From Phallusia mammillata (Eukaryota), in assembly GCA_965637545.1 (NCBI GenBank), contig OZ281499.1:6076001-6140000 (forward strand): DNA of 64,000 bases, in the 5' to 3' direction. Positions 2,369 to 45,493 of this stretch are shown here, one piece after another. Each line of letters begins with the position of its first letter. The first letter of the stretch is position 1. The notes under the pieces were generated by a model. It saw only the letters and a program-made list of their open reading frames with translations. It had not been told where the DNA came from and did not search any database. A program made the translations under genes and the position numbers.

Positions 2369-2626
2369 GTAAGTACCATTTTTTTCGAACTGTTTTGCAC
2401 ATTTTAGCGTTCCCACCCTGTGAAACAACAGCGAATTTTGTTTCGTTTCCGGTCCTTGCTCCCTTTCCGACCTGAAATAACACTTCAGTCTCGATGGACT
2501 AGCTCTGGTGCGAACAGTTTGTAATCAAACAGCCGTCGATTATAAACAAACGTTGAAAAACAAGGAAAACGGGTCCCCAGGGCTGGGTGCCGTGGTGTAC
2601 TGGGAACTGGCGCACGCCTTGGTTTG

Positions 2627-2762
2627 ATGCCTTCGCTGGCTGTTGCACATTCAACTGTTTCGGAGAGCGATATTGAAAAGTACCAAAACAGCAGCGAGTG
2701 TTTAACGGATTGCAACGATGTTTTAAAGAAAAGTGGACAAAAAGTTAAAAAAGATAAGACAG
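2627..2762 (+). CDS. Candidate first coding exon of the distal gene X isoform (MPSLAVAHSTVSESDIEKY...KKDKT)
   Basis: Exon 2489-2762, ATG 2627, ends phase 1 at ag|gtttaa (weak donor). The phase fits exon 7360. Confidence 0.45.
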
Positions 2763-5700
2763 GTTTAAAAAGGCGAACATTTTGTAGGCGTGTACCTACG
2801 AGAAGCTGTAGCATAAGTTTTCAGTCTTAGTGACGAATTTAAAATTTTTAGTCAGTTAAGATGGCCAAAAAAAGGAATTATTAAAATCCGTCAAAGCATC
2901 ACGGTATCGCGCCCATCTTTATTTTCCAACCGTGTCTGTAAACGCGCACGCCGCGGCGGCGATATCTGACGCGTAAATAAACGACGTTTAGTGAGTTGTC
3001 AATAGCCCGGTCGGAATACACAAACGCGTCTGACTGTTACGACATAACGGGCACGCGTGGCTGTGGGACAGTGGCGCGCATTTAATTTCATTACCGCTAT
3101 TTTGGCATTGACGAATGCATGGAGCGCGAAGGAGCAATAAATTATCGCTGCCTAACGACTTCCAATCAACATCTGCTATAATCGAATCATTTAGAGCGAG
3201 TCAATCGAAACCGTTTGATGGCGAAGTTTTGTAAAAAATGCCCTCATGACTTATGACTGCACGAAAACATGCAACAAGGTATGTACCTAAAGTGCCACAA
3301 TTATAACAAGTTGACTATTCTGAAAACATACAGTTTAATGTTTTTGTTTAAATAGCCTATAGAACCATAAAGTATAAAAGCCATGCCGCGAACGATTGAA
3401 AAGAATTCGAGATGATAAACAAAAAGTGTCACCGCATAATCTTCTGATAGAAATGAAGAAATTAGCCTCTACAACAAAAGCTGCCCAGGTTTAAAAAAAA
3501 TACTTAAACACGCGTACATAAATTTTCCGCTTGTTTTCACGCAAGGTCATATTTACAAGAAACTATACCAAAACAGATTGCTCTTTAATATATTGACGAT
3601 TAGTTGCAAACCATAAAGCGAAAATTTCACCAAATTGGGAAAACGAATTCTTTTGTAAACGCATTTACTGCAAATATACCAAACAATAATTACATGAGGT
3701 GATCACAATACAATTGTTTATAAACCGCCTATTATTTTATTCTCTTTCATGCAAACGCCGCCCACAGTCCAGCACGGCACTTGTTATCTCCTGAAGCTAG
3801 CATTCAACTAAAACCCAAAATCGGCTTGTGGTTAAAGCCAAATCTAGTCAGTCATTCTAGCCCATATTCCGGATTAAAATAACCTAAAGTCTGATGCTAG
3901 GCTATATCACGATTAGATCGTACCTTCTGCAGTGTATGGCTTTTGTTAACGGAAATTTTACGGCGTTTTAGATAATTTCCGTGTTGTTTTGTGGGTAGCC
4001 ATATCTCAAAGACTAGCAGCTCACAGTAATACAGCCTAGTTTTAAGTTACCAACTGGCCTACCAAGCTAAGTTAGCCTGGAGCAGTTTAAACACAAATTA
4101 TACATTAGTAAAAAAATATCTGCCACAAACTGACAAATAGATTAAAGCTAAACATACTGATAAATCGAGACTGCTGTAACTGTAATGACAAGAACAAATG
4201 TTATGACCAGAAATTAACATTGTAAAAACAATAATTTGTGATGTCACAAACAAAATGGCGCTCTTTATTGGCAGTTTCGCTTGGCTAGTTCTTTGTTGAG
4301 GGTGGATACGAGGTGAACAGGCTATCAGGCGGCTGTCTTCTCCAATTGAAACGCCAATTTAGAAAAATTGTCTTCAACTGCGGTAAATGTGTTATTTGTT
4401 AAACTGTGCGGTAACAGGTACGACATCTGTAAAAAAGAAAGTCAGCTTATGGTTTAGTTATAAAAATTTGACCTTATAAAGTGTGTTTAAATAACAATAG
4501 GTTGATTTTATTGGTTATTTTTCGTTGAAAAAAGATACAGCCATGATTTTGCTTGTAGATTTGGTTAGTTTGATGAGTTACATGAAATAAATGTGACAAG
4601 TTGTTTACGTCCGAGTTAGCCGTTATTAGGTTGAAAAAGCAGCCCTTAATTAAGGCCAGACCCTGATTTCAACATCACCTTGGGGTAAAATTTATTGGTC
4701 TTACAAAACATAGGCTCTATACAATCAATATAAACAGGTCTGTTGGTGATGAGTTCATGCAGTGGTAAAACAATTAGTTCAGGCTTGTCAACTGAGCCCG
4801 CCGCATTTGTGTATTAGACTGCCTTGCTGTAGAAACATGTGGGTTAAACTGAGCTGGTGTACGCATCGTCGGCACGTCCTATTGACATTTTCTCTTATCA
4901 GAGCACAAGCTTGCTCATACAGTGGATTTTTGACAGGTTTGCAGTGCAGTGTGACTGTGTAACAGGTTATATTCACTTCTTCGTCAAATATTAGCAGTAA
5001 ATATTGATTTTGAAAGTTGTTTTGTCGGTTTTTAGGTTACTCGAACCTTAACAGGTGCCTAAACAGGTGCGTGTGAAGATAAGAATGTGTTGGCTATTGC
5101 TTGATTTTGCAGTGTATCTGTAATATCATTGTTACTTATATTTCAAATGTTGTTTTCAGCAAAAATATTTCCTCTGGTGATCAGAACGTTAAATTTTGTG
5201 GATCTGTATTTTGCAATCGTCTCAAAGAAAACTTGGATTTATACGGATTTAAATCAGCTGTCCACACGACTACTGAAGATAACTGCACAAATCATCAAAG
5301 GTATATTTGAAATTATATTGTTGTTTACCGAATTTATTTTTTTCCAGTGTTTTATTAGTGTTAAACCTATGCTTTGATGTCAAAACCACTATATTTCACA
5401 GAAAAATATTTTTACCAAATAGATAAGACAAACTTATTATAGCTTATTTACAGTTTATATCTCTTTTTATATTTTAAACATACAATTTGTGCATAAGAGG
5501 GTATTTGAAGGTCTATTGAAAGTGGTAAATAGCAGCATTCAACAAACAGCAATTTTGTGTGTTAACTCGTTTTTTCCTCAGTTTAATCACAGTTTAGAAA
5601 ATTTTAAATGTAAAGAAAATCGTAAAGGGAAAAGTAACTTGGGTCCATTTAATTTGTTATGCGTAAGTAAAAAGATTACCACATGTGATGGAATGTAGTT

Positions 5701-7359
5701 TTACTACGTAGTAGTTTGACCTTTAATAGGTACATTTTACGCTTTTACCCGTTTTCCAAACCTAATAACCCATATTCCACTAAAAGCAACGGGGTTCATT
5801 TAGCTGAGTTTTAACAGTACCGTGGGCTTAAACTGGGCCACGGAATAGTCCTCAAGTTAATCCCCTTGGCGTCGTTACGATATCACCACCAATGCCGCGT
5901 CGTACGTCCAGCACTCGGCGCTGAGTTCGTTTATTTGTACAACACCGTGAGGCTGCTGCCGACATATAGCTTGGTTGGTGTAGAAATCAGTGACCCAACA
6001 TATAGATAAACCTGTTTGAGAACATATCTTTTTTGGTCTTCTGTTTTGTATGATTGAAACTGTTGGCAAACATGTGTCTTGTATAAATTACGGAAGTTGC
6101 TGATTTTATTTTTAAATTCTAGTTTAATTTCGAAGCCTGAAACAAAACCGTTTTTTCGTTGGTATCTGCACCAAAGCGGCAACTATTGTCGTTGGACGTT
6201 ATGATCGGTCAGCTCTCATTTACGATAATTATTTGTCATATCCTGGTAATCAAGGGTTATTTCCTGCTTAGTTTAAATGTAATTTAATTAAGTTTGTAGG
6301 TTTATTACTAAATTTTTACTCGATTAACTTTAGGTAATGCGAATTAAATGTTTCCTATTAGAGCTAAGCTTGTATAATGAAAATAAAAATAATCGTTTCA
6401 CAATTAAAGCAGATTTACCCAGGAGATTGTAGGATCAGAAATGATTTGAGAAATTGTCATATCTTCGTTTCCTGGCAACAAAGCGGTTCAAAATCGCTGA
6501 AATTTTGTAATAAACCTAAGATACAACTTAAATTGCTCACAAATTTACTTTGAAACTTATAGTTAACGAAAACTATTCGCTTGTGTCATTTGAACTTTAT
6601 GAACGATTTTTTTTTGACTTGAAGCCTAAACCAACAATTTTAGTGGCAATAAATTACGGATTTTGAAGAATAAGTTCGCACTAAAAATGTAAATCCTGTC
6701 CAAAGCAGAACGACTTGGCCAGCTGATCGCCTAATGTGCGGTTTTCAAGGACTCATAAAGTCCTAAATCCATGCCACACTTCCGAATTTAACATGTGCCC
6801 CTGCTGTGAGGCTAAGCTAGCAAGACAATTCTTTACTTAACATCCGGATCCATTGTCTCGCCTGCTAGGTGGTGCACAGCGTGAGTCAGATTGTGATGTC
6901 ACAAGCTGGACTGTTGCCTCATAATCCCAGCATATGTCATAAAGTTAATGGAGCTTAGGTGGGCTTAACGAGCACTGTTCAACGGTCTGCAGTTCTTTGG
7001 GAAATGTCCCTGTGACATATGCCCAATTGTGAACAACCTGGATTGTGACTAATGGTTGTTTCCATGAAAAAGTTTTACATTTAAGCTAAAAATTTTGACG
7101 AGAATTTTTGCCAAATCTTTACAAATGATAAAATGTGACAATGATAAAATGATGTAATACGTTGGGTTCAAATAAAATCTTGTATTATTGTACAAACTGA
7201 CTTCTAATTTTTTGCCTGATACTCATAAACTTCCTGTTTGCTCAACCGGTAAATATATAAACAAATCATGCTGACCGTTATTTATTTAGCGTTTTAATGC
7301 TGACCGTTTTTACATGTGAGCAAAACCAACTTATTAATGACATGTGATGTTTGTTTTAG

Positions 7360-7446
7360 TCAGCTTGGACAAGCGTTGTACCAAAGAAAGAAGAAAGGAT
7401 TTCCTGGAACAACTGTTAAAGCACGTAAAAGCGACCAGCATGGAAG
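7360..7446 (+). CDS. Candidate coding exon (V)SLDKRCTKERRKDFLEQLLKHVKATSME
   Basis: Acceptor tttgttttag, donor ag|gtatgt, 87 nt, phase 1-1, open frame. Joins in frame to exon 45385. Confidence 0.6.
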
Positions 7447-10400
7447 GTATGTAGCCCTGTGGTAAAATCATATCTGTTGATTTTGAAAAACAAACGTTTT
7501 ACAGTCCTGGTTTAGAATTCTTTGAAATGACATTTAAAGCAAAGTGTATGATTAGAAATTGAAAATATATTGAAAGGGATTCTTTTGAATTGCACTATTT
7601 GGATTTTTACGGTATGCAAAATGACCTTATGCAGAAATCAACAGTTCGTTTTCCTTGTCTGAGTACAGGAAAAGCTAGTCAACTCTTGTTGAACGCCTAG
7701 GTTGCGTTGGCCTGTCCCCGCGCCAAAACCACGCAGACGGAACGAGTGTGATTCTAACAAAAGAATAGAGAAAAGAGAAATTCAGCACCGCATAGCGTTT
7801 AGGTCGTTCGTTTACGCAAAATTGCCAAGCTTGGTAGCTCAGGGGCCAGCGGTTAACTCAGCGCGTGTGGGACAAAATCCGTTTCGAATCAAGTCTGCGT
7901 GATTATTTCCACGCGCAGTAAGACGGGCATATGTCATTCAGTGAGAGTGCCATAAGAAGAACGCGGATTTAGGGAATTACGTGCCGAGAAATTTCACCGA
8001 TGTTCACTGGCTTTAAGCGTAATCCCGTAATGCCTTAATGGACGGTTTGTTTTATTCGAAGGGAATTCCCCGGTAATTCTGTGACGTACTAATTACCTGT
8101 GCGGGGTTAAAATTAATCTGCTGTGCAAATCGCTCTGTTGTGCATTTGCCATTTGTGTTAAATTATGCCCATTAGTGATCAAAGGCCTGCGGATCCTTTG
8201 ATGGTCCAAATTGATTTGAAATATTTTTGTTCCTGTCATTTTACTTTCTAAATTTAGAAATTTGATGTTGTCCCAAAAGTTGCAAAAAGATTATTTTGTT
8301 TAAAGCGATTCAGAAAAATTTAATGCAACTATTTTGTATGCGGCTTACGTTTTTTTTTCGCCAAGATGGTTTGCAAATTGCAAACACAAAATATTGTTTC
8401 CAAATTAAGTTTGATTTGATTTTGTTGTTTCTGTCGTTTTTTGTAACCTGAGATGTTGTTTAAGTTAAAATCGCTAAAATGGCAAAAAATAACGGAAGGA
8501 AGTGTATATGCAACGTTTTGTGGCCTAAGCTGGTTAATTCTCGATAGGATCGTTTAAAAATTGCTAGCTCAAAATGTTGTTTTAATAGTATATGTTTTGA
8601 TGGTATATATTATAAACACTTCTATTTCATATTTGATAAAGTGAGACTGAAAACATTTTATGATTCATTGTTGTCAACTTTCAAAAAGGCAAAAAATATA
8701 GTTGTGGCTTCTTTAAATATTACCAAACATGAGACAAAATGTTATTATTTAACCAGACATAAGACAAAATGTTAATATTTGACCAAACATAAGACAAAAT
8801 ATCCTATGAATAGTCATCTTACGCCTTGTGAACTCACGGAATCTTTATCTGCCAAACAAGCTGAGTCTTTCAAGGTATTTCCAGCAGCCGCATGGGCGCG
8901 TTTCGCGGTTTAAAATCTGCTGGTAATTTGAACGATAAGAAAATTTGTCGGCATCCAATTTTCTTGCCTGTCCACCAGAGAAAATTCGATACCTGGCATT
9001 TCTTACGGCAACAAACGTGATTTGACTTGACAACGGGATTAGGTCCCCTTTCGTCAAATAATTTCCCAGCACTGGTGGTCTGTGTTTTACAGAATGATAC
9101 GCTTAATGACTTCGTGCTGAGTAAGATTTTTGGTTTCAAAACATTGGTGTTTGTACCAAAACATAAATTTTCATGGCTCATTACCAAACAGTACGTTAAT
9201 TAAATGGCGAATTGCCAATATCTGCTTGGGCTAAAAAAATGTTTTTTTCAAAACCTTTCAGTGTTGTACACTTAAAAGCATTTTGGATTGGTAAAATAGG
9301 GTGCAAAGAGTTTCTGTTAATATGATGAAAAAGTAGTCTATTTTAAAATGTCTGAACTCGATTTTGATTATGGAATAAAAAACAACAACAGAAAAGCATA
9401 ACCTGGATTCAAAACACCAAAATTACATGTGTGCTATCAAAAACACTAACAATGGTTAAGGTATATATTGACACAGTTAGAAATATGGGTTTAACTCTGC
9501 ACAACACAAGGTTCATTAGGCAAGTTCAGAAAATCGAAAGTGGTTGAAAATCAATACCAGCAGTTTGCGAGCCAAGTTTAATCAATCTACCACAGTATAG
9601 CTGTGTTCTCTCTTTAAGACTAGATCAAAAATTCCAACCTAAAACTTTTGCGTTTCTTGCTTTTTGGTTGTGGTGACCCAGAACGAGGGCTATAAGCCGT
9701 GTTATCTTAACGGTGCCCATGGTGAACAAGTTTAGGGTCAACGAATAAACACGGCGTCCACAGCGCGTATATTGTATTACTCTTCTTGTGCTCTGCTGTA
9801 ATACAATTACCGGATTAGGCTGGAAGCGAAGACGGTTGGGTAAAAAATTCTTGTTTCGGCGGATACTTTGGTAAAAGTGGGCTTAACAAAATGAATTGAG
9901 CTTCTTTGACCCGTGGGTTAAGGCGATTTTGCTTTAAAGCAGCTGAACAACCATTTTCGTGCTGTATTTGACCTTGCTCGTTAAGGTCTAACCACGTTTT
10001 CAATTGAAACAAATTAAAGCCCGAGAGGAAAGATAAATTGCGGGTTAATAAGGGTACACCAAAACAAAGCGTCATTTCTGATGTAAAATACAAACTTTTA
10101 TTTTGTTTTCCAACCAAATGTTTCAGCCAAATTCCAACTACTATAAGAGTGATTTGATGGCACGCTACTATTGTTTTACGTTGAATTTATTTTGTGCTGA
10201 TTTCAGCATTTTTTACAAAACTAATATTTTGATTATTTTTTTTCTCCATTTTTTTAACTTTTTGACTTGACTTGCAATCTTAACAAGTTTTCAAAGTTAG
10301 CAATATATAAAAAGTACATAAACCATTTTAAAACCCACAAAATTATCGTATAAAAAAATCAATCTGTCAAAATGTTTGAAGAAGGCTTTTGAAATACAAA

Positions 10401-13400
10401 TGTACATGGCAAAAACGCTTAACAAAGCATCTACATTTTATCCCCCGTGATTTTAATCACTATCGACACTAAACGCTGACGAGAAAAAGTTACACGCGAC
10501 GCTAACGAGTTCACGCATCCATACAACACTTTTAGTGGACACAATTCCACCATCTGACTCCCACTGTGGTCCAGGCATCACATACTTATCGTGGATGACG
10601 CGAAATACCGCTAAATTTAACCGACCGGCAAAGTGTTTCAACGCCTAAATCTGGGCGGTGCGAACACGGCTTTGAGCCAGTCGACTCAAATCACCTGTCA
10701 AACTTAATTTCAAAACCAACTCGCCACACTTGCCACCCTGCAGCGCCGGGCCTAATGTGTGGAAAAGAGACAGTAAACACATTCGCGTTGGCAATGTGTG
10801 GTCCTCAGAGAGTGAGCCTTCTTAAACAACAAAAAAATTTACACGCTTAATCTCTTTTTGCCCTGGCCTATCAAGAGGTGTCCTGTTAACAGGCGTGGAA
10901 ATCGTTCCCTGGTTTTCTTGGCCTTGGTATTTCCATCAAAACTTTGCCAAATTGGGGCAGCGTAACACATTTACACACTTAATGTTTTACATAAGCTTTG
11001 TGCAACAGGAAGACAGTCTGCGATCCTGCTATGGGCAAGGTTACTCCAGATAACCCACAGTTATGTGTGAATGTTCGATTTGTTTGCAGTTTGTAATTCT
11101 TACCCCTCTTTGTTGGTTGCAAACAGCAACATTTTTGATGGATATTTGTATGTTTGAATTGTTTCGACTGCGAAAACTCCAATTCAGTAACTTTTTGTTT
11201 TTAAAATTGAATAGTGCTTTATTGTTCCTTGCTTTTGGAAAAAAGAAACACGTTTATTGCTTGCTTATTTTTGGATGTGGTGTAAAAAGCTTACAAACGT
11301 GTTCAACGTAAGTATGTCTGTTTAAATTTTTTTAAAACATTTGAAATCAACTTTAACCAAACCAATAGAGCTCCAATTTAAAACAAAAACTTTCAACAAA
11401 ACTGTTCAAACATTGTTGTTCCGTGTAAAACATTGTTCTAGCGTGAGAGCCACTTGTAACTTTGCCACATCGGTTTACCACTTCCCTTAAGCAATCGTAG
11501 TCGTCCGTTTCGACGCAGCGATCAGCGGCTGTAGACAAACCTGTGTATTCCGCCATTTTGTTTGCAGGTCGTGCAGAGAGCGGCGACAAACGGTTTACAA
11601 TGCTCGATTAGGTCGTCACAGTTGCACAACAATAGCAGGGCAAATTTGCGGAAACGGATTATGACCCATGTGAGGCCGCTGTTCTGACTCTCTGATCTCT
11701 TCAGTTGTGATGTCACTTTCCAAGGCTTGTGTCGTCACAGATTATAACGCGGTTTATGTTTTATTTTTTGTGACATATTTGCGAAATTGAAATAACTGAT
11801 TTAAAGCAACCACCTTATAAATCTAAATGTGTTGATGACTTGCTATTTTTAGTGAGCTACTATCACAAAACAACTGCCTAAGGAACTGCAGTTGGATACT
11901 AACTTTTTTAGACGCGGATTGATATATTATTCATGTGGTTTTAGCCTATTAGGGTGCTGTCAAACATTACTAATAGAGAAACATGTTCTGGGTTGCCATG
12001 CTGCGCGTTTATGCCGCAGGCTGGACTTGATTGAATGCTGCAATTTCTTCGTTCGATCCAAATTTATAGCATACTGTAACGACTGCTCTCGCGCGCCACG
12101 TAGCGACCAAAATGTAAAATGCGGTAAAGGTCATTAAAAATGCATTTGCAAAAGTTGAAAATGATGTTTAAGATAGTTTAGACCGTGAAAAATTGGTTTA
12201 CCATTGCGATATGCTTGTTATCGAACAGTTCCTGGCAGAAATGTGTGCACCGTTTTGGGGTCACTGATCACTATCAACAGGCCGTGTTGCTATTTTAAAT
12301 TCACATTAGCTGTGGCTAGCATTGTAATTTTTTTATTCAAACCTCAGTGTATTTAACTCCATGTTTTGGTCATATTTTAAGATAGTTTAAACGTGTAAAG
12401 TGTCAACTTTGTTGCGTTACCCTAAAGAGTTTCAATGTACCAAATGTAGACACAAATTTAGCACATTCATCAACACTGTCAGACAACTACTAAATGCCGC
12501 ATAGCAGACTGTTTCAGTGTTTTCCCAACTCGGCGAAATCAAAATCAGCCGTACGTTTACCCAACAAGCAGAGAGCAGATCTAAAGCGTGTGTTTATGAA
12601 TCGGCGCAACATCTTCAGGCTAATCTCTAGTTTTGCTTAGCAGAGTTGTGGATTGTTTAAATCGCTTTCAGAGATTACAAAATCACGCATATCCGTGTGT
12701 CATAGGGCAGCACAAAAATGTTTTATATCTTGTGGTAGGATTGTTTTGATGTTTGAAATAATAAAACCGAAAAGTAAAACCCTTACAGTCAACTGTTCCA
12801 ACAGCTACTTATGTATCGTATTTTGCAACAATTATTTAATCAAAGTTGTACACAGATAATTGTATTTATAGACCTTACCTAAGCTGACAAACATAGATGT
12901 TTAATGTGGTAAATAATTCTGATTGCAAAAACTTGTATATTTTTTTTTGTAACTTGTATATAGAATATTTTATTAATCAATATTAAATGTGTTGTTTTGA
13001 ATGCAAATACTTGGCTTAATGTCGGAGCAAAACAGCCCGGTTTTCAACTGCATGCTACTTTGTACACCTTAACACTAGTCAGGTGGACTTCACTAACCTT
13101 GTTGTTGTTGTTTTTGTGTGGAGCAAGGCGAAGTCGTTATCGGTTCCCTGCAGCAAATCACGTAGATGACTCATAGACTTCTGTCGTGCGGTTGTAACGC
13201 AACATTTGCAAAACGATGTGGTCGATAAGTTTACCTAATTTGCTTTGAGCGTGGTGTAAGTTGGGAGATTTGATTTAAGCGAACTTGTTATTGTAGCATA
13301 GTTCATTGGAGTGGCTTAAACAATTTACAAACTCATGCAAAGAAATTTGGTGTTGTATGCCTAAGAAGTATGCTTTTTAAACATTACAAAGTATGCGCAT

Positions 13401-16400
13401 TAGAAGGTATTGTATGTCAAACAACGTATGTCTGGACAATGGTACCAAGCAATTTCACAACTTTAAGAAGCTCAGATTTTAAAACCGTGATAATGAAGGA
13501 ATTTAACTTAATTATTGTGGTATATTTTGTTGGTTTTAATAAGGTTTAAATAAATGACCCAGTGTACACTTTGAAAAATGCATTGTATTAAATTAAAGAC
13601 GACTGTAAACACTTCATTCACCATAGGAGCAGGTCGTTTGCACGAACATACACAAATCTCTGGTCCTTCTCCCTAGTAATCTCGCAATGTGTCTGCAAGT
13701 TAATCCCTCATATCTGGAAGTCCCATTTCGTCAGATAGTCCGTCTGTGGCTCTTGTGTTTTAAGGCCCAGACACGAGTGCATGGACAATTTGCTCCCCTC
13801 ATGCGGTATACCACCAGATTTGCCCTTCTCGTTTAGATCAAGGTCTAGAATTTTCTAGAGATACTCTGGTGCAGATAAGGCGAAAACCACACATATTTTT
13901 TAACGATATTTGATATTGGTAGATGTACAAGAATTTTTTAAAACTAAGAAAACATAAATTTGACAATACACTTTATCAAAACAAAACCCTCAAAAACTAA
14001 ATTTTAAATTTAGTGAGCTAAAATCATTTCTTTATTTTGTTTATTTGTGTATCCGGTTTTGAAGAAACAGTGTCCTTTGCATGCATTTATTGAAAAAAGA
14101 AAGGTTGGACAAGGGTTGCATTTTATTTAAAGACAGTGTTATTGATGAAACTTCTTTTTGTTTCCTTTGTAAACACGTGACCTAAAAATTGACATTTTAA
14201 ATATTGTATTTCGTTTGTTAAACTTGTAAGCATATTTAGTTGTACTAGACACGGACTCGAAAAGTAGCTGAACAAATCCAAAACTGCCACAGAGCTTGTG
14301 TACAGTAAATACATTGTAACAAAAACTTTGTATCAGCCGGCGTTGTTATTATCCGGGTTTATAAATATCGGGAAATATCTTCTGGTAAATCGGATTGTAA
14401 TCGATTTTTTCAAGCAAATCGTTATCAGCAGCAATTGTCAAAGCTTTTTTAAGAATAATATAAAGCCATCGTGGAATGATCATTCCGCTAGGTGACACTA
14501 AATTTAAATGCGATCAAATATCATTTTTTTCATGAACAACAAAATCTGTGCATATAGTTTGTCGATTTTCAAAACACTAAACAGCCTAAAGTAAACAATA
14601 TTAGTCACTTTCGATTACTGCAAATATTGTCGGAGATGTGCCAGCAAAATCTGTCTCCGTTTATTCAAAGTGTCAAACTGTCATTTGATGCTTAGCACTA
14701 CTCACAAACTGGCAATTGTTAGTGTCAGTTTATGGCGTATTAATCGACTCAATGCAGCATTAAAGCTGTCTCATCGGCTAAGTTATATGTTGTGTCTGTT
14801 GTTATAACAACGGATTTGCAGTTAGACGGTAAAATTGCATCTTCTGGCGACCTTAGGCAATATTTAGTTTCTAAAGTTTACCGTCAGCAATCGTTGATCT
14901 GTTCACGGATTTTGGCCGACTTTTATTGTGATTTTGTAAACTTGGAAACAAATCCATAGCGTTGTGTGGTAAACTCTGTTAATCTACGACAAATCACCTA
15001 CAGCGTGGTGCTCTGACTCACTTAATGTCTTTGTGGTCTGTGATTAATTGCCCGGCTTAGTTAATATTCTCTTTGAAGGCCGTTTTTACTCGTGTGTTAT
15101 TTGAACCTCAGCTTAAATTTGCTTAAACGATTGGTTGTTTGGTATTTATTTGTAATACTTTACAAAATGTTATGATATGATACAAAATGTTATGATATTC
15201 ATCGTACAACAACCAGAATCAATAAACACGGTTCGTATCAGTAAATAAAATGTTGTTTTTGATTGTCTTGGCTTAAAACGATTGTCTTGTTGTGATTAAA
15301 TTATTATGTTGTTGTTTTTAATATTTTTGGCAATTGTTATCAACCAGATAAAATAAACTTTGTTTACCTAAAATTTCCTTGTTATAAATAACGAGTCATT
15401 CTTGCATTGTGTAATTCATACAGTTCGACTTTAATTGTCGACTTTTTTCTGTGTTAACCTGACACACCTAAATTGTAAATTACATATTCACAAGAAAGAA
15501 TAAGCTACGTATATTCGGTTACGATTAGATAAAGTCAAAAAAAAAATATTCTGTGCTAAATTGTTCTGTAGTTGTTTAGTTTCCACAACATTTTTTTCGC
15601 ATTTCAATCCCTTTTTTTCTTCCATAAGGGTTCTTACATGCCTTTCTCGTGCATTTTTTACAACCACTCAGCTGTAGATAAAGGCAAATTGGTGTGAACG
15701 TATATTTGCAAAGCACTTAAGCAAACGTCCCATCGGATGCAAATCCTACTAACAAACCACGATGATTTTTTTGTTTGCGAGTCAATTAAACGACCGCTGA
15801 AATATTGATGTAATAATCCCTGTACCTTACTGCGGTGGATCTGTCCTTCTAAATTTTGTTTGCATGCAATCAAAAAATAACATATGCAGCTATTGTTACA
15901 GTAATCCTTTCTTTAAAACACTTTAAGTATTTATTGTTTGCATGTGTGAAAATTTTCCGTGCTTAAAGTTGAACAAGATTACTGTAATGTGCGCCTAATA
16001 CATCGTAATTCTTAGCAATTATCATGAATAAGATTGTAGGTTTGCAAACTACATGTAAATGGGGCAGACTGTGGCAGATTAGAAACAACGACCAAAGACT
16101 TAATAATTTAATTTTCTGTTTCTTGCAAATAGACCATCAGGTTTAATATGGAACTTTATGACATTTTAGGGTTATTCCCAACTGCTTTTGTTGGATTAGC
16201 TTTTAATTAATATCTTTTTAGAAGCTTTTAGCATCTTGTAACTTCTAAGCTATTGCAATCCTGCCTTTATTGGTTGAACAATATCTCAACAAATGAATAG
16301 TTGAAACGGCGGTAAAACAATGCATTTGCCAGAACAGCATTATTTAGTTTAAATATCTGATAAGTTTATGCGGTTTTCCTGTTATTTTATCAAAGGTCAG

Positions 16401-16603
16401 TTTGCTTCTAAGTTTTCGTGTCTGTGTATGGTTACCTTTTGTGCAGAATTGTTTATGAATTTTTATGTTTGAATTGATACTGGTAGAAAACAACAAATTG
16501 TCTGGTTTTGCTAAGTATACAATGATCTATTCACATGTGTGCGAATGGTTCATTCATATTTGCCTAAACGGTATTTGTATTGCTGTCCTGTATTGTCCAC
16601 CAG

Positions 16604-16639
16604 GTGGCGACTTGGAGGTCACCAGAACGCAGATGTTTG
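16604..16639 (+). CDS. Candidate 36-nt cassette exon (G)GDLEVTRTQMF
   Basis: Acceptor ctgtattgtccaccag, donor tg|gtaaga, phase 1-1, no stop. Overlaps a CTCF-like motif. Confidence 0.3.
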
Positions 16640-29802: not shown

Positions 29803-29808
29803 CGCCTG
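29803..29808 (+). CDS. Candidate 6-nt microexon (cgcctg) with downstream Rbfox sites
   Basis: tttaatttccag|cgcctg|gtaagt; TGCATG at 29824-29829 and 29850-29855; frame-preserving. Confidence 0.45.
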
Positions 29809-32020: not shown

Positions 32021-32046
32021 TGACCCCTGACCTGCACCCTTGACCC
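32021..32046 (-). promoter_or_regulatory. Nuclear-receptor DR1 element plus a third half-site
   Basis: + strand TGACCC c TGACCT gcaccct TGACCC; the first two half-sites read AGGTCA g GGGTCA on the minus strand. Confidence 0.45.
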
Positions 32047-35000
32047 CCGCGGCGTCAGGCGATAGCCTTGTGCTCGCCAATGCGAGGTCTGATTGCCAAG
32101 GCCTGGTGCGGATCACGTAGCACTTGAACTAGGACGATAGGGGACCCGTCGATGGACAGTGTAAAGGATCGTTAGCCTTATCGCACTGAGGAACGTTAAA
32201 ACCCAGTCCGTGAGAATGTCCAGTGATACATTGTACAGGTGAAAGTAATACGCTGTGTGGTGCCTCGTTGACTCTTCCCGTAAGCTTCGAGGCGGTCCCG
32301 TCCAAGGGCAAGTGTACCTTCATTGGCCTGTATGTTGAGTGATTTATAGCTTTGTGGCTGTGTTGTAACAACCGCCAGGACCTACCGTGGTTTTGGCTCC
32401 GGCGATTTTTGTCTTGCTGTTTTTACTACGTCATATAAAATGCAAAACTTATAAAAATGTCCATTAAAAAGAAATAGTTAATAGGCCAGAAAACATGCAC
32501 TTTGTTCAAAAACACAAAAACATAGCAGATAAATTGTTTAAACAAAATGCTAAAATAGGAACCATACTTTAGTCTGTGGTAGTTTGGTCACTTTACTACT
32601 GAGAAAATTGTTAAAGGCCAAAATCTCTTTTACACCGTTTTGAACAAGTTTTAATTGGATTCAGCAGGTGAAAATGGTCGTATTACCAACCAGTACGTTT
32701 CGAATAGTTTGACTGAAAGCTATACTATATAGTAATATGAAAAACTTTAAGTTGTTTAAAACAGTGGTTGCTCCCTGTTAATGATGCCGAAATTTGTAGC
32801 GAACAATATAACTTTTACGACCTTCTAAAGATCAAACAACAACCACAAAAAACGTTGCGCCGTTTCAGAAATAAAACAGGAAGTTTTGAACGAAAGATCA
32901 ATATGATTTTAAAGCGCATACCTGTTTTGCAAAAAAAAACTGTAACTTCAAAATAAAACGTTGAAGATGTTGTTTACAGTAATTTAGCATCACACTCAAC
33001 TCTTTGAAAATTCTTATATCTTTAGTGCGTATCTGTACCTCTAATGGGAGAACACTCAATCACGGGAACAACACTGCGGAATGTTCCCAAGCTCCAGCAA
33101 AGTTATCTTTAACAATCGAGACCTTGAATTTGACGCAACACAGACCCTTTGCTTACGCCGCTAATTGAATCTAACGGATGGGGGTTGCACAACTAATGAG
33201 CCCCCCAAGAATCACCACACCCTTTGTGCTAAGTTTCTCTGTTGGCGAGCGTATCAATCACTGTTGTGTGTTTGACGGGCGATTACGAATTACAACACGA
33301 ATTTGTGCCCAGTGCCAGAAGTTTGCACGTTTAGAGGCAAAAGTAGGATAAGGGTACAGTTTTTTTAAGACCCGCTTTTTCATCAATGTTTAGTTGTGAT
33401 TTCGTACCTAGAATTATGAGATCTTTGTCCCTATGTAGTTTTTTTGTGAAAGTGGTAACTTTCATTGGTTTGTGTAAAAGACAGCCCAAGCAGGAAAACT
33501 CAAACAATTGGCCACCTCTTCGTAAACTTAATTCATTACATCAGAAACTTCATAACATACTCTTTTGGTCAGGCTTCACGTGCAAATCAATCCATCAACC
33601 AAAAATTCTCTTTAAATTTTCCCTTTTCCTCAAAACATATGTGGCCCATAGTAACCTTCGGTTTGTTAGGTCAAAATATAGTGTCTAAATTTATTGCTGT
33701 CACGGTGCAATTACTCATAGATTTTATTTGTAGCTTGAAATCCATTTTTTGATCATAACTTTCTCCCGCGATATTTTTCATGTCAAAAAAAGTTTGCTCG
33801 AAGCCCTTCATCTCTGGAACAACCGAGTACAATAGATTGCGACGCGCGTAGACCCGATCGCGAACTAACGTTTTGAGATCTAATCAGCCTTTTATTTTGG
33901 GTGTGCAGCGACATGGCGGCCAATAATCGAACGACCCCTTGTCATTGACAGAGCACCTTCGCCAATATTTCTACCTCAATCCCGGTGGCGCAAATTTACT
34001 TTTACCGGACCTAGTGTGATTGGCAAACAGTGCTTCTGTGTTATCGCCTAGTGTCAACAGGTTGCAGCGAGAGAGACCACTACGGAACGGCGCCAGAGCA
34101 CAATGGCACTAGTGACGTCACAGGGCCATCGTTCTGTCTGGCTGTCATTTGGCAAGTGCCACTGCCCGCCCTGCGAACCCCCTTCTTTCATGCTGACCCC
34201 GCAAAACGAGATCGGAAAACAATACCGGAGCGATAAACCGCTTTTTTATCGATGTTTCCATGCTGTTTTCATTGTCCGAGCCGCAATAAGCGTCGTGTTT
34301 TTGCTCACAGAAGCAAACAACACTGGCCTTATCTATATACTGTGTGCATACAGTAGTGCTGATATATCAAACGGCGGAAATATCGCCTTTTGTGTAAGGA
34401 AAAGTGAATATGGAAGCGATAATTTTCTAACAACAAAAGTGATTGTGCGTTCTGTTCCCGAACTGTCACTCCAGCCCAATGGATTCTCACCATCTTTTAC
34501 ACTTTTGACCCCTTTCTATATTACCAAAACACACTTGACCTAATGTACACTGCAGCATAGTCAAAAGCACGCCATTTTTTCTGGCATCTTTCATCAGTAT
34601 AATGCAAAAAATACATTCCTAGAGTTGCAATAAATTTCCATTGAAATTACTGTTTACTGTTTAAAATTAAATGTAGATCTAGAATAGTTACATTCATTCA
34701 AACAAATAAATTATTAAAAATGTACACTTCGAAAAGAAAACTAGGTATAGTATCTTTCTAAAGTTTTTGTTAGTCGTATTTAACAGTCCTATCTGTTTAC
34801 AAATTGGAGAGTCTACCCAAACAATCATAGTGACCATTAACTGCCACATAGCTGTTATCTACTTTACCCAACTGACTGTTACAAACAAAACATTTTTCCA
34901 TTTTTGCAGTGTACTATTTTGTACCGGCTACAAGTTCAAATATAAAACACAGTTCCATTAAGCACGCATAAACAAATCTAAATCCTATTGCATTTTGCTT

Positions 35001-37018
35001 TTCTGTATGCAGCTGTACGTTATACGTCCCCGTGTCAATCTCCTTACTATTTCTATTGTACGCAGGAATTTCTTACCCTCGGAGAATGACCCCGAAGTCA
35101 GTCATGCGTGAAAGGTCGAAATCAGCTACGTCACCGGTCAAGCATGTTTGATTCCAACGAATCCTGAACAACGCTGTGAAGCAAGCAAAGTCGTGAAATG
35201 CTGCTTTGGGATTGGAAATCTTTGATGCTGGGGGCGTCGACTCTTTGGTGCACGTTTAATCTGGCGGCAAATTTGTAATTCTGTTTTGCATACTGCTCCT
35301 AGACTTTGTAGTTTGATGTGGTCACTTGAAAAGGGTTGGTAATTTCTTAATTGGGTTATAACTCGCAGTAGCATACTTGTGGGTATTCTTGAGGCGTATT
35401 TTTTTCGCCGCTTGTCTTGATTTTATTTGTTTCCATGTAAAACGAAATACATGAATCTTTTGTTGTTTGTTTTCTGGTTTTTGCACGTTTTTGTTATCAT
35501 ATTGATATTCGGCGTAAAATACACGGACAATGGCCTAAACATAGCTAAATTGTCATCAAAGCAAGAATTTACTCAATTTGAACCGAAAGTCATCCCCATT
35601 GAAATATTGCATAAGAAGTGTTTTTGGTATAAAAGTGTAAAATTGGTGCAAACTTTAACCAACCAAGACCAATTTCATTTTTTAGCATGTACATTTTTTT
35701 ACGTTCAAGCATAACAAAACACAGAAAAAGCTCTTCACTTTAGACAACTGTTCATTTCCTGTGTCCAAGCATTCAAGACCGGGCGTGACCGTTTTCAGCT
35801 GCTCGACTAGTTTGTTTGCTGACCATTAGGCGACAAGTACGCCCACGTTAACTCGGTCTCTCAAAAGTGGCGATCCCTTAATCCCTACCCTGACACATAA
35901 CGTTTTCACTCGTCACCGATTTAAGCCTTATCACAGTGGCCGCGGAGCAAATCGTAATCGCAACGAAGCCCAAACTGTTGTTGCAAAGTCTGTTTACGCA
36001 ACGTGCTGACGGCGTACTCTCCCTAGACTAGCCTTTGCCTGAAAAACACCTTTCTTTCAGCATCAGCACATCAACGATGCACTCTACGGAATCTCGTATC
36101 GTGTTCTCGCCATCAAGGCTTTGTCGTTTGTATCAAAATCGGACGCACGGCGATATCAAAGCCACACGGCACTTTTAGACCCCCATGGGTTTGGGGCCCC
36201 AGGCACGTTCGGCAAACAGAAACGGAGCTTGGCTGGAAGCGGGGCGCAACATTCGACCAGGCCACGCTGCCGCCTTGTTATTCGTGCGAAACCACGCGTA
36301 ATGTACAAGAAACCTCAAAACAGAATTCGTGATTTCACACGCATTGGGGGTATGATCGTTCCTCTACGTATTAGTGCATTACCAACTATTTACGGTCCGT
36401 CCTGGTATTGACTAAAAGCATTTATTAGAAAGTGCGACCCTCTGATGTCAAATACTTACGTGCTGCTGACCGGAGGAGTTTTAAATATTGGGCAAGTCTT
36501 TGCTTAGCACCTTAAAATTCCCACGACGCACTGAACCCAATGCACAGTTTAAAACCATATACTTAACGTAGCTACCCACTGTCCGGGCTTCCGAAGTTTA
36601 AAATCTGACTGCAATCACATTATTTTTTAGGTTTTTAATTGCTACACAAATATAGTTTTATTTTTAAATTATAAACTAAGTCAATGCGCTTATCATTAAA
36701 CTTTTGTTGAGCGCATTTTTCACCATAGTTACTACAAAACACTCTGACTAGTGTATTCACACAAGTTAACAAAGACATTTTCCCAGGAGAATTTAATAAT
36801 TTTACATGTATCACACGTAGCATTAGCAAACTTTCATTTTTAAAAAAGGTGTTTTGTTGAAATCGGAAGCAGAAAGATATTACACCTGGCCACTGTTGAC
36901 CCAGAACAATTCTAAAACCCAATTTCAATTCCGAACTAGTTTGAGAAAAGACAAGAATTACCCCAACTCCGTCGAAAACAAACAGTTTTAGACACTTTTG
37001 TTACCCGTTTTACTAGTT

Positions 37019-37437
37019 CAGCGGTTCCCAAACTGGGGTCCGCGGTCCTTTAGGGGTCCGTGAGGCAATTTTGGGGGGACCGCGAAGCGGTTGAAGTAAT
37101 TCTATAATCTTATTTGGCGTCAGTTGGTGCCACTAAATATGTTTAAATCAAAGTAGAATTGAGAATCGACTGTCTCCATTGCTAAACAATGGCCTTTATT
37201 GAATGACAAATATCAAAAATGCAATTGTTCGCGCACAATCGTAATGTTTTTGTCCTGTTTGTGATGTCATATGCTGTCTTTGGATGATTGTTATGCGCAA
37301 TTTTGCATAACTAGCTAAAATCCTGCAATCAACTTTCGTTTTTTGAAATACACATTTAAGCTTAAGGACCGCGAGCCCTCGAAATAATGGCAAAGGGACC
37401 GTTTTGAAAAAAATATGAAAAAGTTTGGGAACCACTG
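37019..37437. mobile_element. hAT-type MITE (419 bp)
   Basis: 16-bp TIRs cagcggttcccaaact / agtttgggaaccactg (1 mismatch); perfect 8-bp TSD tactagtt (37011-37018, 37438-37445). Confidence 0.9.
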
Positions 37438-40400
37438 TACTAGTTCTTCAGACGTTTCAGTCTGTTTCGTGTTTGTTGTGTTAAACTCACGCCAGAAGGA
37501 CGTGCTTACTAGAAGGTGCTTTAGGTTCACATAAAATATTTTTATTTAACGAGCTTGTTACAAAACATTCATATATTCCACATATATATATATTTTAGTA
37601 TCGTTTATATTTATCCGAATTGTTTTGGTATTTGGTCTGTTTCTCCCTAGTAATACAAAATTAATAGTTCCCTAAAATGATGACTTGAAAAGCATAATTC
37701 GTTTCATGAAAATGAGCAACGAATATAATTCTGTTAATTTGTAAGAGGACTTGATGTCGCATATGGCTATCTCCAATATTTTGTGGCATAAAACATATGA
37801 TGTTTAGCGACATATAGCGGAGAACAGTTTTACACTTGTATACCGGTAAGTCAATGTCCAATTACTCTTTTCATGTTTTTTTTTGTATAAAAGGATAAAC
37901 CTAGCTGTTCGTTTTATGTAATGTATCCATTAGTCACAAAGACACTACAATTACCCAGTATTGCGCTGTTTTAAGATTTATCAACAATGAACGCCACTCA
38001 CCATTTGGTTTTCTCATAGGTCGAAACACTTTATCTTTTCACAGATTTACAACAAGCAATTCAATATGTGAACAACACAACACGTGAAAGGGAAGATGAC
38101 ATCATTTTTTCCACAGATTATGGACGTTTATGACATCACAGTCGAAGATTGTGGAGCAACTGGTAAACGGCGGCAAATACATAAATACTTCACCAATTTC
38201 TATGTTAAGCATTGTACTACCATCTTAAATTTAAGTACAAACATTTATCGTAAATATTTTTTTAATTTTATTTTAAATGTAAAGGCCACTTTGATATACT
38301 TGCTGCTTGTGCATAAAACCGAAACTTATAGGCAGGTTATCCCATTTTTTTGTTAAGTTACCCTGCGTTATACACTTTTTTTAAATTTCACCTGCATTAT
38401 AACAAATCTTGTAAAAATCCAACATTGATAACCAATAAGCGGCAGTGACCAAAGAAAGCAAGACATGTTTCGGTATCAAAACGATCAATTTACACAAAAC
38501 TGTTTAAATGTATATGCAATCAATCAATCAATCATTCAATTTTATTTTGTTTACAGCGCCCATAAGTATTCACAGTAATTCACAATAAACGGGACAAGTC
38601 AAAGCGTTGCCACACGTGGTTATAACTTGTAGCTGACCCCAATATGCAAGTTTATATGTTCGGGCAAAAAGTGTCTTAGCTGCAAAATTATTGCTTTTGT
38701 TAGTTGGTAATACACAGCTAAAAGCAATTTTCAACCTACATGTAAGAGGAATTTCATTGCCTACTTCGCAGCCAACATATGCCTCCAAAATTAACGTATT
38801 GTCAATCGCAAATTCAATGATTTAGCGGCTAAATTTTTTGCCCATAACTTTCGATAGATGTCGCCATCGCTTTGGTTGGTTTGACTTTTATGGCCGATTT
38901 GCAACATGTATGAATAATTGGTTGAATATCATCGGACAATAGTACTTGAATTTTTAAGTTTAGAGTTGAACCAACATTAACAAACTATAACATAATTCTC
39001 GGAGCACTTTGCAGGCTAAACAAACAAACAAATAATGCGTTTTAAAACATTAAACGTCATCAGAAACTACTAGTGACCCCTGGACTTTTATTTAAGGGCC
39101 ACTGCTTTAGCGAAACACTACTGTGCCGTGGCACACTGTTATGCATTGTAAACTATCCACAAATTTTTCAAGTCGACGAGATGCAACCCCCAAAAAGTAA
39201 AACAAGCACACGCTTTACAAAATAAGCAACCAAAAACATTCAGCCAAGTTCCTGTCCACTTTAACTTTATTTTCAATTACGAATTTTGTTTATTGCTTAG
39301 CTACTACATCACCTAGCGGCCATGTCTTCGCTCAGAGCTATCAGTATAGTATACTTATTATAACATTCAATATAAACTCCAGATGAGTAAAAAATGGAGC
39401 TGTTTGTTTGCATCACATCCAAGTTTCAATCTACCATGTCGCGTGATAACTTTGAACGAGTTTAAAATTCAACTTGGTGTGTTATCATCAATGCATCGTG
39501 TTTTTGCACCAACAGTTCTAGTACTTTGCAATAGGATGTGCACAGGACATAGCTGCACACCAAACGAACTCAAATGCCCCCGGAAACACGTGATGTTAAA
39601 CTGATTCAGAGGATATACGACACATGTTACAAACCGCACATGCTGTCAAAACACATATGATGAGGGTGTAAACAGGGGTGTATTGTTGAAAGGTTTTGTT
39701 ACGGCAAAAAAGCTTAAAATACGGGCATGTGTTTGACTTTCCACGACGTAAATAGACAGTGTTTTGGTTGATTAGGTTAAGCTGAAATAAAAATTGCACT
39801 CAACGGGTAACTGCAGATGTCAATGCGTTTAGAATGGATTGCACATGTAACATTGCACAGAAATACACAAGAATGGCTTGTACAGGTTATTTGTTTTTTG
39901 CTTTGCTCAACTTTTTGTGAAAGAATGGTTATGCAAACATAAAAACTATAGTTTTGAGTAGCTAACGTGTCTCAAAGAGATTTAACCGAAACTGAATATT
40001 CGACCACTATGCCAAAACAATTAGGGCGATCTCGCCAAATTGCGCAGAATCACAGGTTGCCACTGCTTCAAGTAAACTCGCATACAAAGGTTTGAGAGAA
40101 GTCATTATAGTTCACAACATTTATTATTCTATTATCAAAATAATGTCTTACGTTGCCAGCACTTTATCGATACAAGGAAGAGTTAACCAACTTTATTTTC
40201 TTTGATCAATTGCTAAACGTTTAGTTAAGCACTGTTTTCACAATGCAAGTTATGGGCTTCAACCGAAATTTACAGATTGCTTAGGCTGAAACCTACAAAT
40301 TGCCAAAATACGTATTTATTTTAAGTGTATCCACTTGGACGTGGACATTCATTCAAATATATCACCCTGTCTGTTTGATTTAAGTGTGATAGCAATATTA

Positions 40401-41740
40401 CGTGCAGTTTGCGTTTGCGAAACCAACAGACAAAATGAAAAGATCACGTGTTTCAACCGTGACGCGCCATTCAGTAAAGCGCTTGGATAGTGTTGAAAAC
40501 TTTTTTGCCTTTTATGGAAACATGGGAATGTCGCAATTTGCGTTGGCCTAAGACTTACCTAGGGTGTCCTCTAATCGCTCTCAGGCGCTATAGAAATCAC
40601 GATACAATGACAATGAATAAACAATCTATTTTAGCGTAGACTAGTTTCGCTCGAGGCGTTTAGTTGAGTAATAATTATTGGGCAACGCGTCATGTTTCGC
40701 CTCAGATGTGAAACGATTTTAATAGCGATTTTGTACGGTCTCTCCATTGTTAAAGGCCTACATACACATTCCAAATGAGTTTTTCGCTTTGGATTTCCAT
40801 GATGCATGCTTTCGTTTAGGTTAGCAGTCTGAAAGCAATTCTCCATTATAGCAACTAGTTTTGGGGCATTGTGACTGAAGTCACGTTCCGTGCAGGAACT
40901 GCGAAAATTGTGTGTTACGTCAAAGAGCAGTGTTTTTGAAAATCGGCAAGTCTTTGTTGCCATATATGAACTCAAAGGTGTTTCGTAATTTGCGTCAACC
41001 AAAGAGTTACTTCGAGTCTTATCCAAGTACAGAGAATTTAACGAACACAAAATCCCAACAGAGGGCAAATGTGGGCCATTTCCTATGATGGACTTTTCTT
41101 TTTTAAGATCGGGTGATGTTTACGCAATAATCGTATGATAAACGCGTCACCTTGACGTTGAACGTCTGCCGTTCCAGTCAGACTGAATTTAGCGTTTACC
41201 AGTGACCGACTTGTGAAGGAAAGCCCGAGCGTTCCAATAGACCCTGCCTTGCCTGTGACGTCGACCACGGTGGCGCGACGTTATTCAATACATGGGGAAA
41301 TGACGACATGCGTAGGCCGGTTGGTCCTCTGCCTTTGTTTGTTGTTGGTATTTTTTGATGCAGTTTCGGTTAAAGTCGCCAATTAGTAAGTGAATTTATC
41401 ACAGTTGTGTTGGCTGCGTGGGTGAATACTGCGATCAAGAAGGTATAAATTGCCCTTCAGTGTAGGCGGTCGCGGTTTCGTGTCTTTGATCAAGTTAATT
41501 GCGTTTACAGCAACAACGTTTCATCTGCAACATTTGTTGCCAGTCATTGGTGTGACAAGGAAGAGTTTGAAAAGCTTCTGAGGCCTATCCTTTAGGACAG
41601 CAGTAAACAGTTATCAGGAAGATATCAGTTTCAGTCATAAGCATGAATGTTATATGGAGGAGAAACAAAGGCTCTGTAGTTCATTGATTAATTACAGTTT
41701 TTATGCCCTTGTTCAAAACTGCACATTGTATACAGTAGAA

Positions 41741-41902
41741 ACAATCGTGTTAAGAACTACCAAGCATTCAAGAAAACACGAGGACGTGGAAACCAGAGTC
41801 CTTTTGGCATACTTTTGGAGTTACAATCGTGTTACAAACTACCAAGCATTTAACAACACGGGGACATGGAAACCAGAGTCCTTTTGGCATACTTTTGGAG
41901 TT
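41741..41902. repeat. Two-copy tandem duplication (82 and 80 bp)
   Basis: acaatcgtgtta...ggaaaccagagtccttttggcatacttttggagtt repeated at 41741 and 41823 with a few differences. Confidence 0.9.
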
Positions 41903-43139: not shown

Positions 43140-43546
43140 ATGGACGAACATGCAAAAAGAAAGGAGGACATATACTGGAAGGCATTTGTGGGTTTCGTTT
43201 CGCCACAAAAACGCGTGGATACACCTGTGTATCGTCAGCGCAGCTTTGAATACATGGAACTGTCCGACAAGGCCTGCAAACAATCACTGGATTCCAATTC
43301 ACAAGACGATTGTGTTCCCAATTATGACTCAATAAATGCGAAAAACAGCACTGAGGAAATCGTTAAAGACAAATCCGAACAAAGATGTTTGATACAGACT
43401 GTTACGTCACTGATAGGCAATTGTGACCTCAATACAAGCCCAGAGGAGGACAATCAAATTTCTAAAAACAACAACAATAGCCTGGATTTTAGGGAGGAAC
43501 AATGCACTTTCGAATGCCAAAATAAGACAACGTTTTGTGAAACAAA
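43140..43546 (+). CDS. Gene X (uncharacterised, 533 aa), proximal first coding exon
   Basis: ATG in aagATGg context, MDEHAKRKEDIYWKAF...; donor aa|gtaggt, phase 2. The ten exons sum to 1602 nt = 534 codons with no internal stop. Possible upstream non-coding exon with donor gtaagt at 41386 and acceptor at 43047. Confidence 0.75.
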
Positions 43547-43828
43547 GTAGGTATACAATGGTAACTTTCGAGGGACCCGTAGAGCCAACGTTATGTGGTC
43601 TGGCATAACCAAACAATATTATCACCCATAGTGGGAAGTACATTAACCTTGTCTTAGTTTAAATCAGACTTACAAGTATACAAATTTTTTTTTAAAATTG
43701 CATGTAAAAAACATATGTTTTAAAGGCCATACTGTAAAAAATGCCCGTTTTTAACTAATTCGTAGTGAATAACAAATGTAATGAATGATGTGATACTGCT
43801 TCCTTACATGGTTGCTTTGTTTTGTTAG

Positions 43829-43956
43829 GCGTGAAAGTCGTATACTATCAACTTCATCTGTTGAATCAACGGAAAATGAAAATGAACATAACGAAGATTT
43901 AACTGAGACATTTACCAAACACAAAGAAAACTTGCAAACCGACAAAAATTCCAACG
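43829..43956 (+). CDS. Gene X coding exon 2 (RESRILSTSSVESTENENEH...)
   Basis: ttttgttag|...|gttagt, phase 2-1, open. Confidence 0.8.
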
Positions 43957-45384
43957 GTTAGTACACTTTTGGATATGAATTAGTATTCGATTTTTTGTTA
44001 GTAATTTTAGAATTGACAATTGAGACAGAAACCATTTTTTTGAGACAGAACAGAAGTCAGCCTCGAATTAAATCAGTTTTATTTAAGCCCGAACCCGACT
44101 CAAACCCGACCCATACAACTCTGTACCACGTTGTTGGTCCTTTTGGTTCTAACTCTATACAGTTTTGACCATATTGCTATTTCCGTCATTGCTTGTAAAA
44201 AATTTAAAAGTTTGAAATTTATCGTAACTTTAAGAATGTTAACTTTTAACTTGACTCGGTTCTGGTTTAGTCAATTTAATATTGAAATTGCCACTTGAAC
44301 ATGTGAGTTGATCCGGGTAAACGCTGTTGATTAATTAAATGACATCAACCCTGGTGCAGCACTGACGTCAATGTGATTAATAACGGTTGCTGTTTTGATG
44401 AAACTGAATTGACTTTATGCGAGCGTGCCAGAAATGTGACTGGATTTTATTCTACATTTATAAATCCTTTAGTGTAAACATAACTATTTTTTGTATCATA
44501 TGAAATACAAAACGCCCCGTATCATATATGTTGTTTAAATCCGCCTCAAACGTTGGCTGTACATAAAAACACAGGCCATTGGCGTTGTAAACTTGCTATG
44601 GATATTCTCGTGTGAGTATAGGAAGGGACCTCAATTGAAATCCGAATCACATGTTCTACTTTGATCTTTGCATGTTTCCCGACAGTTTCCGAAGCGGATG
44701 TTTTTACCAGAGACCGTGTGCTATATTTCACTGCGCTGCATAGCCACTATTTTAGTTGAATGGTACCGGTGTTCATTATATATATAGGACCTTGCGGTAC
44801 GATGACATTTGGCATTAAGAAATGTGTAGTGAACGTTTTATTTACTCATTTACCGAACGTTTATGTGTTTTTGTTTACGATATAATGCATATCAAGTTGG
44901 CACTATACATTTGTATTTTCTATTTCAGTCCCAAACGATCATCACGTTTGCCATCCATTAAATATTTAATCTCCTTAAAAGCGTTTAAACATCTTGGCTT
45001 GAATTAAAGCCTCGTTTTACATCTAGCTGTATTTATCCCAAAAAAGGACAAAAAATATTCTTGTTAATGACAATTATAAGTTCAAACTTGAATGCCTAAT
45101 GCTAAATACGGTTATCCTAATACCGGCATGCATTTCTCAGTCCTAAAAGTGTTGTTTGTAATCAGGTACATAGAAAATTCTGAAAGTTTTGAATATGAGA
45201 TTCACATGTATGAGTGTTAAATAACAATGAATAAGCTACTTCAAATAACTTACAAGTTTTGTGTCATTACAATTAATATTAAATCATCATGTTGCCTTCA
45301 GCAACTGACTTCTTGATGTCACGTGATTAAAGGTAGCCCTTGCCCCGTAAATCATTTTAATGGAATCTATTCATTCACATTCAG

Positions 45385-45493
45385 ATTTGCTCAGCGACGA
45401 TGAAAAGTCCAAACCAACTGATCCCGTTGCTCCTGCCGAGTTACAGCCTATGAAAGGTGATGAATTGTTTCTGGGAGATGATAGTTTGGAGGG
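45385..45493 (+). CDS. Gene X coding exon 3 (DLLSDDEKSKPTDP...)
   Basis: cacattcag|...|gtaagt, phase 1-2. Confidence 0.85.

Follow-up and report, generated by a model that had tools for sequence, protein, structure and literature searches.

Conserved linkage of Pitx, the orphan gene X and RUFY in Phallusia mammillata, and a proposed distal 5' end of gene X beside Pitx

Does the orphan gene that follows Pitx in the ascidian Phallusia mammillata begin right at the 3' end of Pitx, so that the long interval between the two genes is one of its introns, or is this interval intergenic? The question arises in a stretch of 64,000 nucleotides (nt) (assembly GCA_965637545.1, contig OZ281499.1, positions 6,076,001 to 6,140,000 of the forward strand; the window), which carries on its + strand, in this order, Pitx, a long interval without genes (the desert), the orphan gene, here called gene X (43.1-50.6 kb), and a RUFY-like gene (from 53.8 kb). 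The original prediction placed a distal 5' end of gene X in two segments next to Pitx, D1 and D2, and joined them to a gene X exon at 45385. We consider it probable that D1 and D2 do not belong to gene X and that the desert is intergenic. The gene X mRNA would then start at a proximal promoter, with its first coding exon at 43140, and D1 and D2 would most likely be chance open reading frames (ORFs), pseudo-exons, or part of a short separate transcript. The solid results are the conserved Pitx-gene X-RUFY linkage and an unmethylated domain rich in cyclic AMP response element (CRE) sites; the absence of the distal join and a regulatory role of the interval are what we infer. The segments and exons on which the question turns are the following.

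2627-2762, + strand: D1, an ATG-initiated ORF segment of 45 codons (136 nt); its end, in phase 1, is at a very weak GT (CAG/GTTTAA)
7360-7446, + strand: D2, a candidate cassette exon of 87 nt, phase 1 to phase 1, with acceptor ttgttttag and donor AAG/GTATGT
41300-41385, + strand: putative first exon of proximal gene X, non-coding, with donor TTA/GTAAGT
43140-43546, + strand: P2, first coding exon of proximal gene X, with a strong Kozak context around its ATG and its end in phase 2
43829-43956, + strand: P3, second proximal coding exon, phase 2 to phase 1, joining 45385
45385-45493, + strand: common exon, proposed acceptor for both P3 and D2, starting in phase 1
46828-46968, 47641-47776, 48487-48626, 48890-48985, 49546-49654, 50048-50167 and 50410-50625, + strand: rest of gene X, the last exon with the stop codon

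The reading frame and splice signals of the distal segments

We rebuilt the gene model exon by exon, counting frames on locally concatenated exons. The coordinates, phases and peptides originally given for D1, D2 and the 45385 exon were all correct. When D1 and D2 took the place of P2 and P3 and were followed by 45385 and the exons downstream, the frame was open over 429 amino acids, as claimed, and the pentapeptide SMEDL did arise at two joins, 7446/45385 and 48985/49546. Gene X in its proximal form, with 10 coding exons (43140-43546 to 50410-50625), has an open frame of 533 amino acids. Its putative first exon at 41300-41385, whose promoter region contains TGACGTCG, is a prediction from the sequence. 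P2 has an acceptor upstream of its ATG (near 43048), with a poor pyrimidine tract.

The splice signals of D1 and D2 differ in quality. On the donor matrix the D1 donor (CAG/GTTTAA) scored -3.2, which is not above a random GT, and the nine scored donors of gene X ranged from -0.4 to 7.7; no stronger donor was found within or just past the D1 ORF. The D1 donor is not credible, and credible splice signals were thus not found for each of the two distal exons. Alternative chains with weak donors, for example 2627-2699 to D2, were also in frame. The sole strong donor near D1 lies at 2369, at the end of a possible leader exon.

2303-2368, + strand: possible leader exon, not coding-like, between the acceptor at 2302 and a donor at 2369 that is strong (AAT/GTAAGT, score 3.9)

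This segment holds an 18-codon mini-ORF from the ATG at 2315, with a codon score of -5.4 and no phase-0 partner. An ARF/ARL-like gene starting with MGLLF at 2315 was considered and rejected, as the P-loop is found nowhere in the window and the apparent match in a relative was due to chance.

The logic of the join adds a further demand. D2 joined to the acceptor of P2 or P3 hits a stop codon, and 45385 alone keeps the frame; a distal transcript would therefore have to skip both P2 and P3, which have usable acceptors. Such skipping is possible, yet unusual for alternative first exons, which usually splice to the first common acceptor. In this 42 kb, each combination of strand and phase has about 0.5 pseudo-exons that match the splice quality of D2. 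Three poly(A) signals lie downstream of D1 (2880, 2976 and 3136), and a short separate transcript is therefore also possible. It would start at the CRE pair just by the Pitx poly(A) signal.

2195-2218, no strand: pair of full CRE palindromes (TGACGTCA), 16 bp apart, shortly before the poly(A) signal of Pitx
2274-2279, + strand: likely Pitx poly(A) signal, the first AATAAA past the Pitx stop codon

The CRE pair could be a promoter-like element; otherwise it would be a 3' element of Pitx.

We also asked whether D1 and D2 are copies of other parts of gene X. The genome has a single copy of the region 2100-7600. A duplication of the exon 7/8 region as the origin of D2 was rejected, there being no DNA similarity, and a derivation of D1 from P3 was marginal (2657-2758 versus 43845-43946, ungapped, BLOSUM score 43, shuffle p of about 0.001) and was not retained; nucleotide identity over this ungapped alignment was 42%, and tblastn misses it.

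Gene X is a real, fast-evolving orphan gene, and the specific exon join is a gene-model hypothesis on that gene. In searches done exon by exon, Pfam matched no piece of D1, D2 or gene X; the final gene X exon, compared with 1.84 billion representative proteins, gave a single match, which was spurious and of low complexity; a word search of public proteins with P2 and exact look-ups of the P2 and D1 ORFs in protein collections gave none; and the Atlas gave no usable match.

Weighing a distal start of gene X against an intergenic desert

Several observations weigh against the intergenic reading. A codon model was trained on RUFY and Pitx exons only, with GC-matched windows as the null. D1 scored 11.1, a value reached by none of the 1807 null windows, and D2 scored 8.2, reached by 0.12% of them; the claimed frame was the best of six for both segments, and the coding signal turned strongly negative directly past 2762, the proposed boundary of D1. 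Among 103 splice-bounded candidates D2 was the second-best locus, its acceptor and donor are genuinely good (donor score 5.1), and its best in-phase coding partner between 7.5 and 45.4 kb was 45385. Recurrence of the five residues SMEDL across the new junction has a chance probability of about 0.003 by our own, post hoc estimate. In addition, about 400 bp separate D1 from the promoter-like CRE pair upstream of it. As a candidate exon, D2 is respectable. GC-rich patches of the desert gave similar raw codon scores, on both strands and in several frames.

The relatives available for comparison were ascidian contigs in metagenome assemblies, found via the last Pitx exon, to which they show identities of 74% (species A), 58% (species B) and 59% (species C). 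No similarity to D1 or D2 was found in the 10 kb downstream of Pitx in species A, B and C, or upstream of gene X in species B. This absence says little, because the 5' exons of gene X itself are not recognisable in species B either. A D2-like peptide, LRELKATS, upstream of gene X in species B was rejected as not significant and lacking a donor. SMEDL is not conserved in species B, where this exon starts with SASDF, and the surroundings of the two SMEDL occurrences showed no extended similarity. Species B does have a candidate counterpart of P2 (L013:6620-6994), which ends in phase 2 like P2 and has a donor-bearing segment nearby upstream; in both P2 and this candidate an acceptor lies upstream of the ATG. 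Their sequence similarity is weak and does not establish the counterpart status.

Strand asymmetry in the desert was compared with that in the introns of gene X and RUFY. The GC and TA skews resemble those introns only to about 20 kb: the GC skew was +0.01 to +0.07 at 4000-20000 and then negative, -0.04 to -0.09, at 20000-40000. The change of sign near 20 kb may mark a boundary in transcription or in repeat content within the desert, and speaks weakly against a single, continuous transcription unit on the + strand. As to clues to a host gene, no small nucleolar RNA, microRNA or transfer RNA (tRNA) was found in the desert.

What favours the intergenic reading is the combination of the D1 donor, the frequency with which exons of D2 grade arise by chance, the need to skip P2 and P3, the poly(A) signals past D1, the candidate P2 counterpart in species B, the lack of D1/D2 similarity in the relatives and the reversal of skew at 20-40 kb. 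If this reading is correct, the 42 kb interval would be, presumably, a regulatory landscape within the unmethylated, CRE-rich domain common to the Pitx 3' end and gene X.

The alternative that survives best is a distal 5' end of gene X, in which D1 (or the leader exon) would be spliced to D2 and on to 45385, with P2 and P3 skipped and the desert forming a 38 kb intron; its product would be the 429-amino-acid isoform or a shorter one from the ATG at 7440. We regard it as unlikely, though by no means negligible. It would account for the open frame, for the coding-like codon usage of D1 and D2 in the required frame, for the good splice sites of D2 with 45385 as the best in-phase partner, for SMEDL at both junctions and for the CRE pair upstream of D1, and it is consistent with the Pitx-gene X linkage being kept over a long interval without genes in species B. 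It needs, however, the non-credible D1 donor or another first exon, and it must bypass two exons whose acceptors are usable; a protein record is absent from the collections searched, counterparts of D1 and D2 are not detectable in the relatives, and SMEDL is not kept in species B. Moreover, introns of about 38 kb are rare in ascidians. On the same doubtful footing is the proposal that transcripts of the orphan gene start about 50-350 bp from the Pitx poly(A) site and run through the conserved desert as a 38 kb intron, such a start being either a CRE-driven promoter or an operon-like arrangement. Were it true, an overlapping transcription unit would lock the downstream regulatory landscape of Pitx to gene X, which would explain why the Pitx-gene X-RUFY linkage has been kept.

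It is improbable that a distal promoter feeds gene X through the P2 acceptor near 43048, or that the upstream stretch is removed by spliced-leader (SL) trans-splicing, so as to give the usual 533-amino-acid protein with D1 and D2 as untranslated leader or upstream ORF: the usual joining of alternative first exons to the first common acceptor, the acceptor upstream of the P2 ATG in both species, and the donors at 2369 (strong) and 7447 (good) fit this, but it would leave unexplained why D1 and D2 show coding-like codon usage in one specific frame, and the pyrimidine tract of the P2 acceptor is poor.

The conserved linkage and the CpG domains around Pitx

The neighbours of the proposed join, and the CRE sites scattered between them, are as follows.

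777-1274, + strand: last exon of Pitx, with the end of the homeodomain, the OAR motif (Pfam OAR, 8.5e-11) and the stop codon
7447-41200, no strand: the desert, an interval without genes, with no Pfam-recognisable ORF, Rfam family or tRNA and a CpG observed/expected (o/e) ratio of about 1
53775-64000, + strand: RUFY-like gene, with N-terminal extension exons, RUN domain, coiled coil and FYVE
2195, 2211, 21046, 29025, 34113, 44363 and 45936: CRE palindromes

In species B, Pitx, the 3' exons of gene X and RUFY lie together on one contig of 240 kb (ENA), with order and strand as here and the Pitx stop codon at record position 128,137; the match of a RUFY exon search fell on this same Pitx-bearing contig. 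Colinear counterparts were recognised for three 3' exons of gene X, those at 48487 (shuffle p 0.06), 49546 (pairwise E 5e-6) and 50410 (shuffle p 0.01), the last with SRSWSTP in species B versus PRSWSLP here. RUFY N-terminal exons lie downstream of gene X in species B, and the interval without genes after Pitx measures about 74 kb there versus about 42 kb here. Because the genes are colinear on one strand in a distant ascidian, the order Pitx, interval, gene X, RUFY is conserved. Linkage in related tunicates had been put forward as a check on the distal model; the Pitx-gene X linkage itself was found again in species B, while a counterpart of D1 or D2 was not detected in the relatives. Human RUFY1 and PITX1 (chromosome 5), RUFY3 and PITX2 (chromosome 4), and RUFY2 and PITX3 (chromosome 10) presumably share chromosomes, and the tight Pitx-RUFY linkage of ascidians may for this reason be an ancestral chordate linkage.

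Three further observations concern the sequence between and within these genes. The desert contains a young interspersed repeat of about 420 bp (37019-37437), with at least 39 genome copies at 96-98% identity. In species B a hAT-type transposon (FAM200/ZBED5-like ORFs, L012 2918-4327) lies between gene X and RUFY. The N-terminal extension of RUFY is long and disordered (exons 53775-54080 and 55177-56330, one of about 385 codons), and it is partly conserved in species B, where the two exons are colinear with those here; one example is the end of the long exon, which is 66% identical over 99 residues.

CpG o/e divides the window in two. It was 0.9-1.3 for the 3' end of Pitx, for the desert and for the body of gene X, this last having 0.97; for RUFY it was 0.39 (0.2-0.5 over its body), with a sharp boundary at about 53.5 kb. 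This pattern suggests an unmethylated domain abutting a body-methylated RUFY, and the boundary suggests a RUFY start near 53-53.7 kb. The ratio was uninformative as a test of intron versus intergenic sequence: it cannot separate the two for the desert, because the body of gene X is itself unmethylated.

Full CRE palindromes (TGACGTCA) were about 9-fold enriched, 7 being found versus 0.75 expected, all of them within 1-53 kb and none in RUFY; in the desert they are borne by GC-richer patches. The Pitx flanks of two other ascidians contained 6 and 5 such palindromes per 20 kb, versus about 0.2 expected.

In Ciona, gene-body methylation marks broadly expressed genes (PMC3827831), and in the genomic regulatory block model bystander genes are typically broadly expressed (PMC5728398). 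The body CpG o/e of gene X puts it in the unmethylated class of Pitx, and gene X is in this respect unlike a typical broadly expressed bystander. By the same indirect measure it is RUFY that looks like a bystander or flanking gene. Of the features expected of a Pitx bystander, gene X shows synteny with Pitx that is kept in species B, but its CpG class, itself an indirect indicator, is not that of broadly expressed bystanders.

A distal start of gene X beside Pitx, hypothetical as it is, would provide a clear tunicate example of the flanking desert of a developmental gene lying inside an intron of its neighbour, an arrangement believed to keep genes linked in genomic regulatory blocks. It would be open to direct testing, since this ascidian is experimentally tractable. 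Whatever the outcome for the join, a candidate regulatory domain of Pitx, suited to reporter studies and to assays of transposase-accessible chromatin, is delimited by the conserved gene order together with the sharp change of methylation type at RUFY.

Comparison with known systems

The layout next to Pitx recalls the ascidian operons processed by SL trans-splicing. The unpaired acceptor at 2302 lies about 25 nt past the Pitx poly(A) signal at 2274, as in an operon or a leader exon. Unlike in such an operon, the first ORF past this acceptor is the 18-codon, non-coding-like mini-ORF, with no in-phase partner.

The proposed join can also be compared with alternative distal promoters that use mutually exclusive 5' exons. 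D1-D2 and P2-P3 both end in phase 1 and both fit 45385, as such sets do. The proximal set differs from them in having internal exons with acceptors that would need skipping, and the proposed distal first exon, D1, in having no credible donor.

With a genomic regulatory block (PMC5728398) the locus shares some features and not others. A conserved non-coding element was not detected in the limited sequence compared (about 10 kb per relative flank, at high divergence), and enhancers within a gene X intron are only hypothetical here. Gene X is unmethylated (CpG o/e 0.97), and RUFY alone carries the methylated, broad-expression signature. Like a genomic regulatory block, however, the locus places a developmental transcription factor, Pitx, beside a long gene-poor interval, and a distant ascidian preserves the order and strand of its neighbours, gene X and RUFY.

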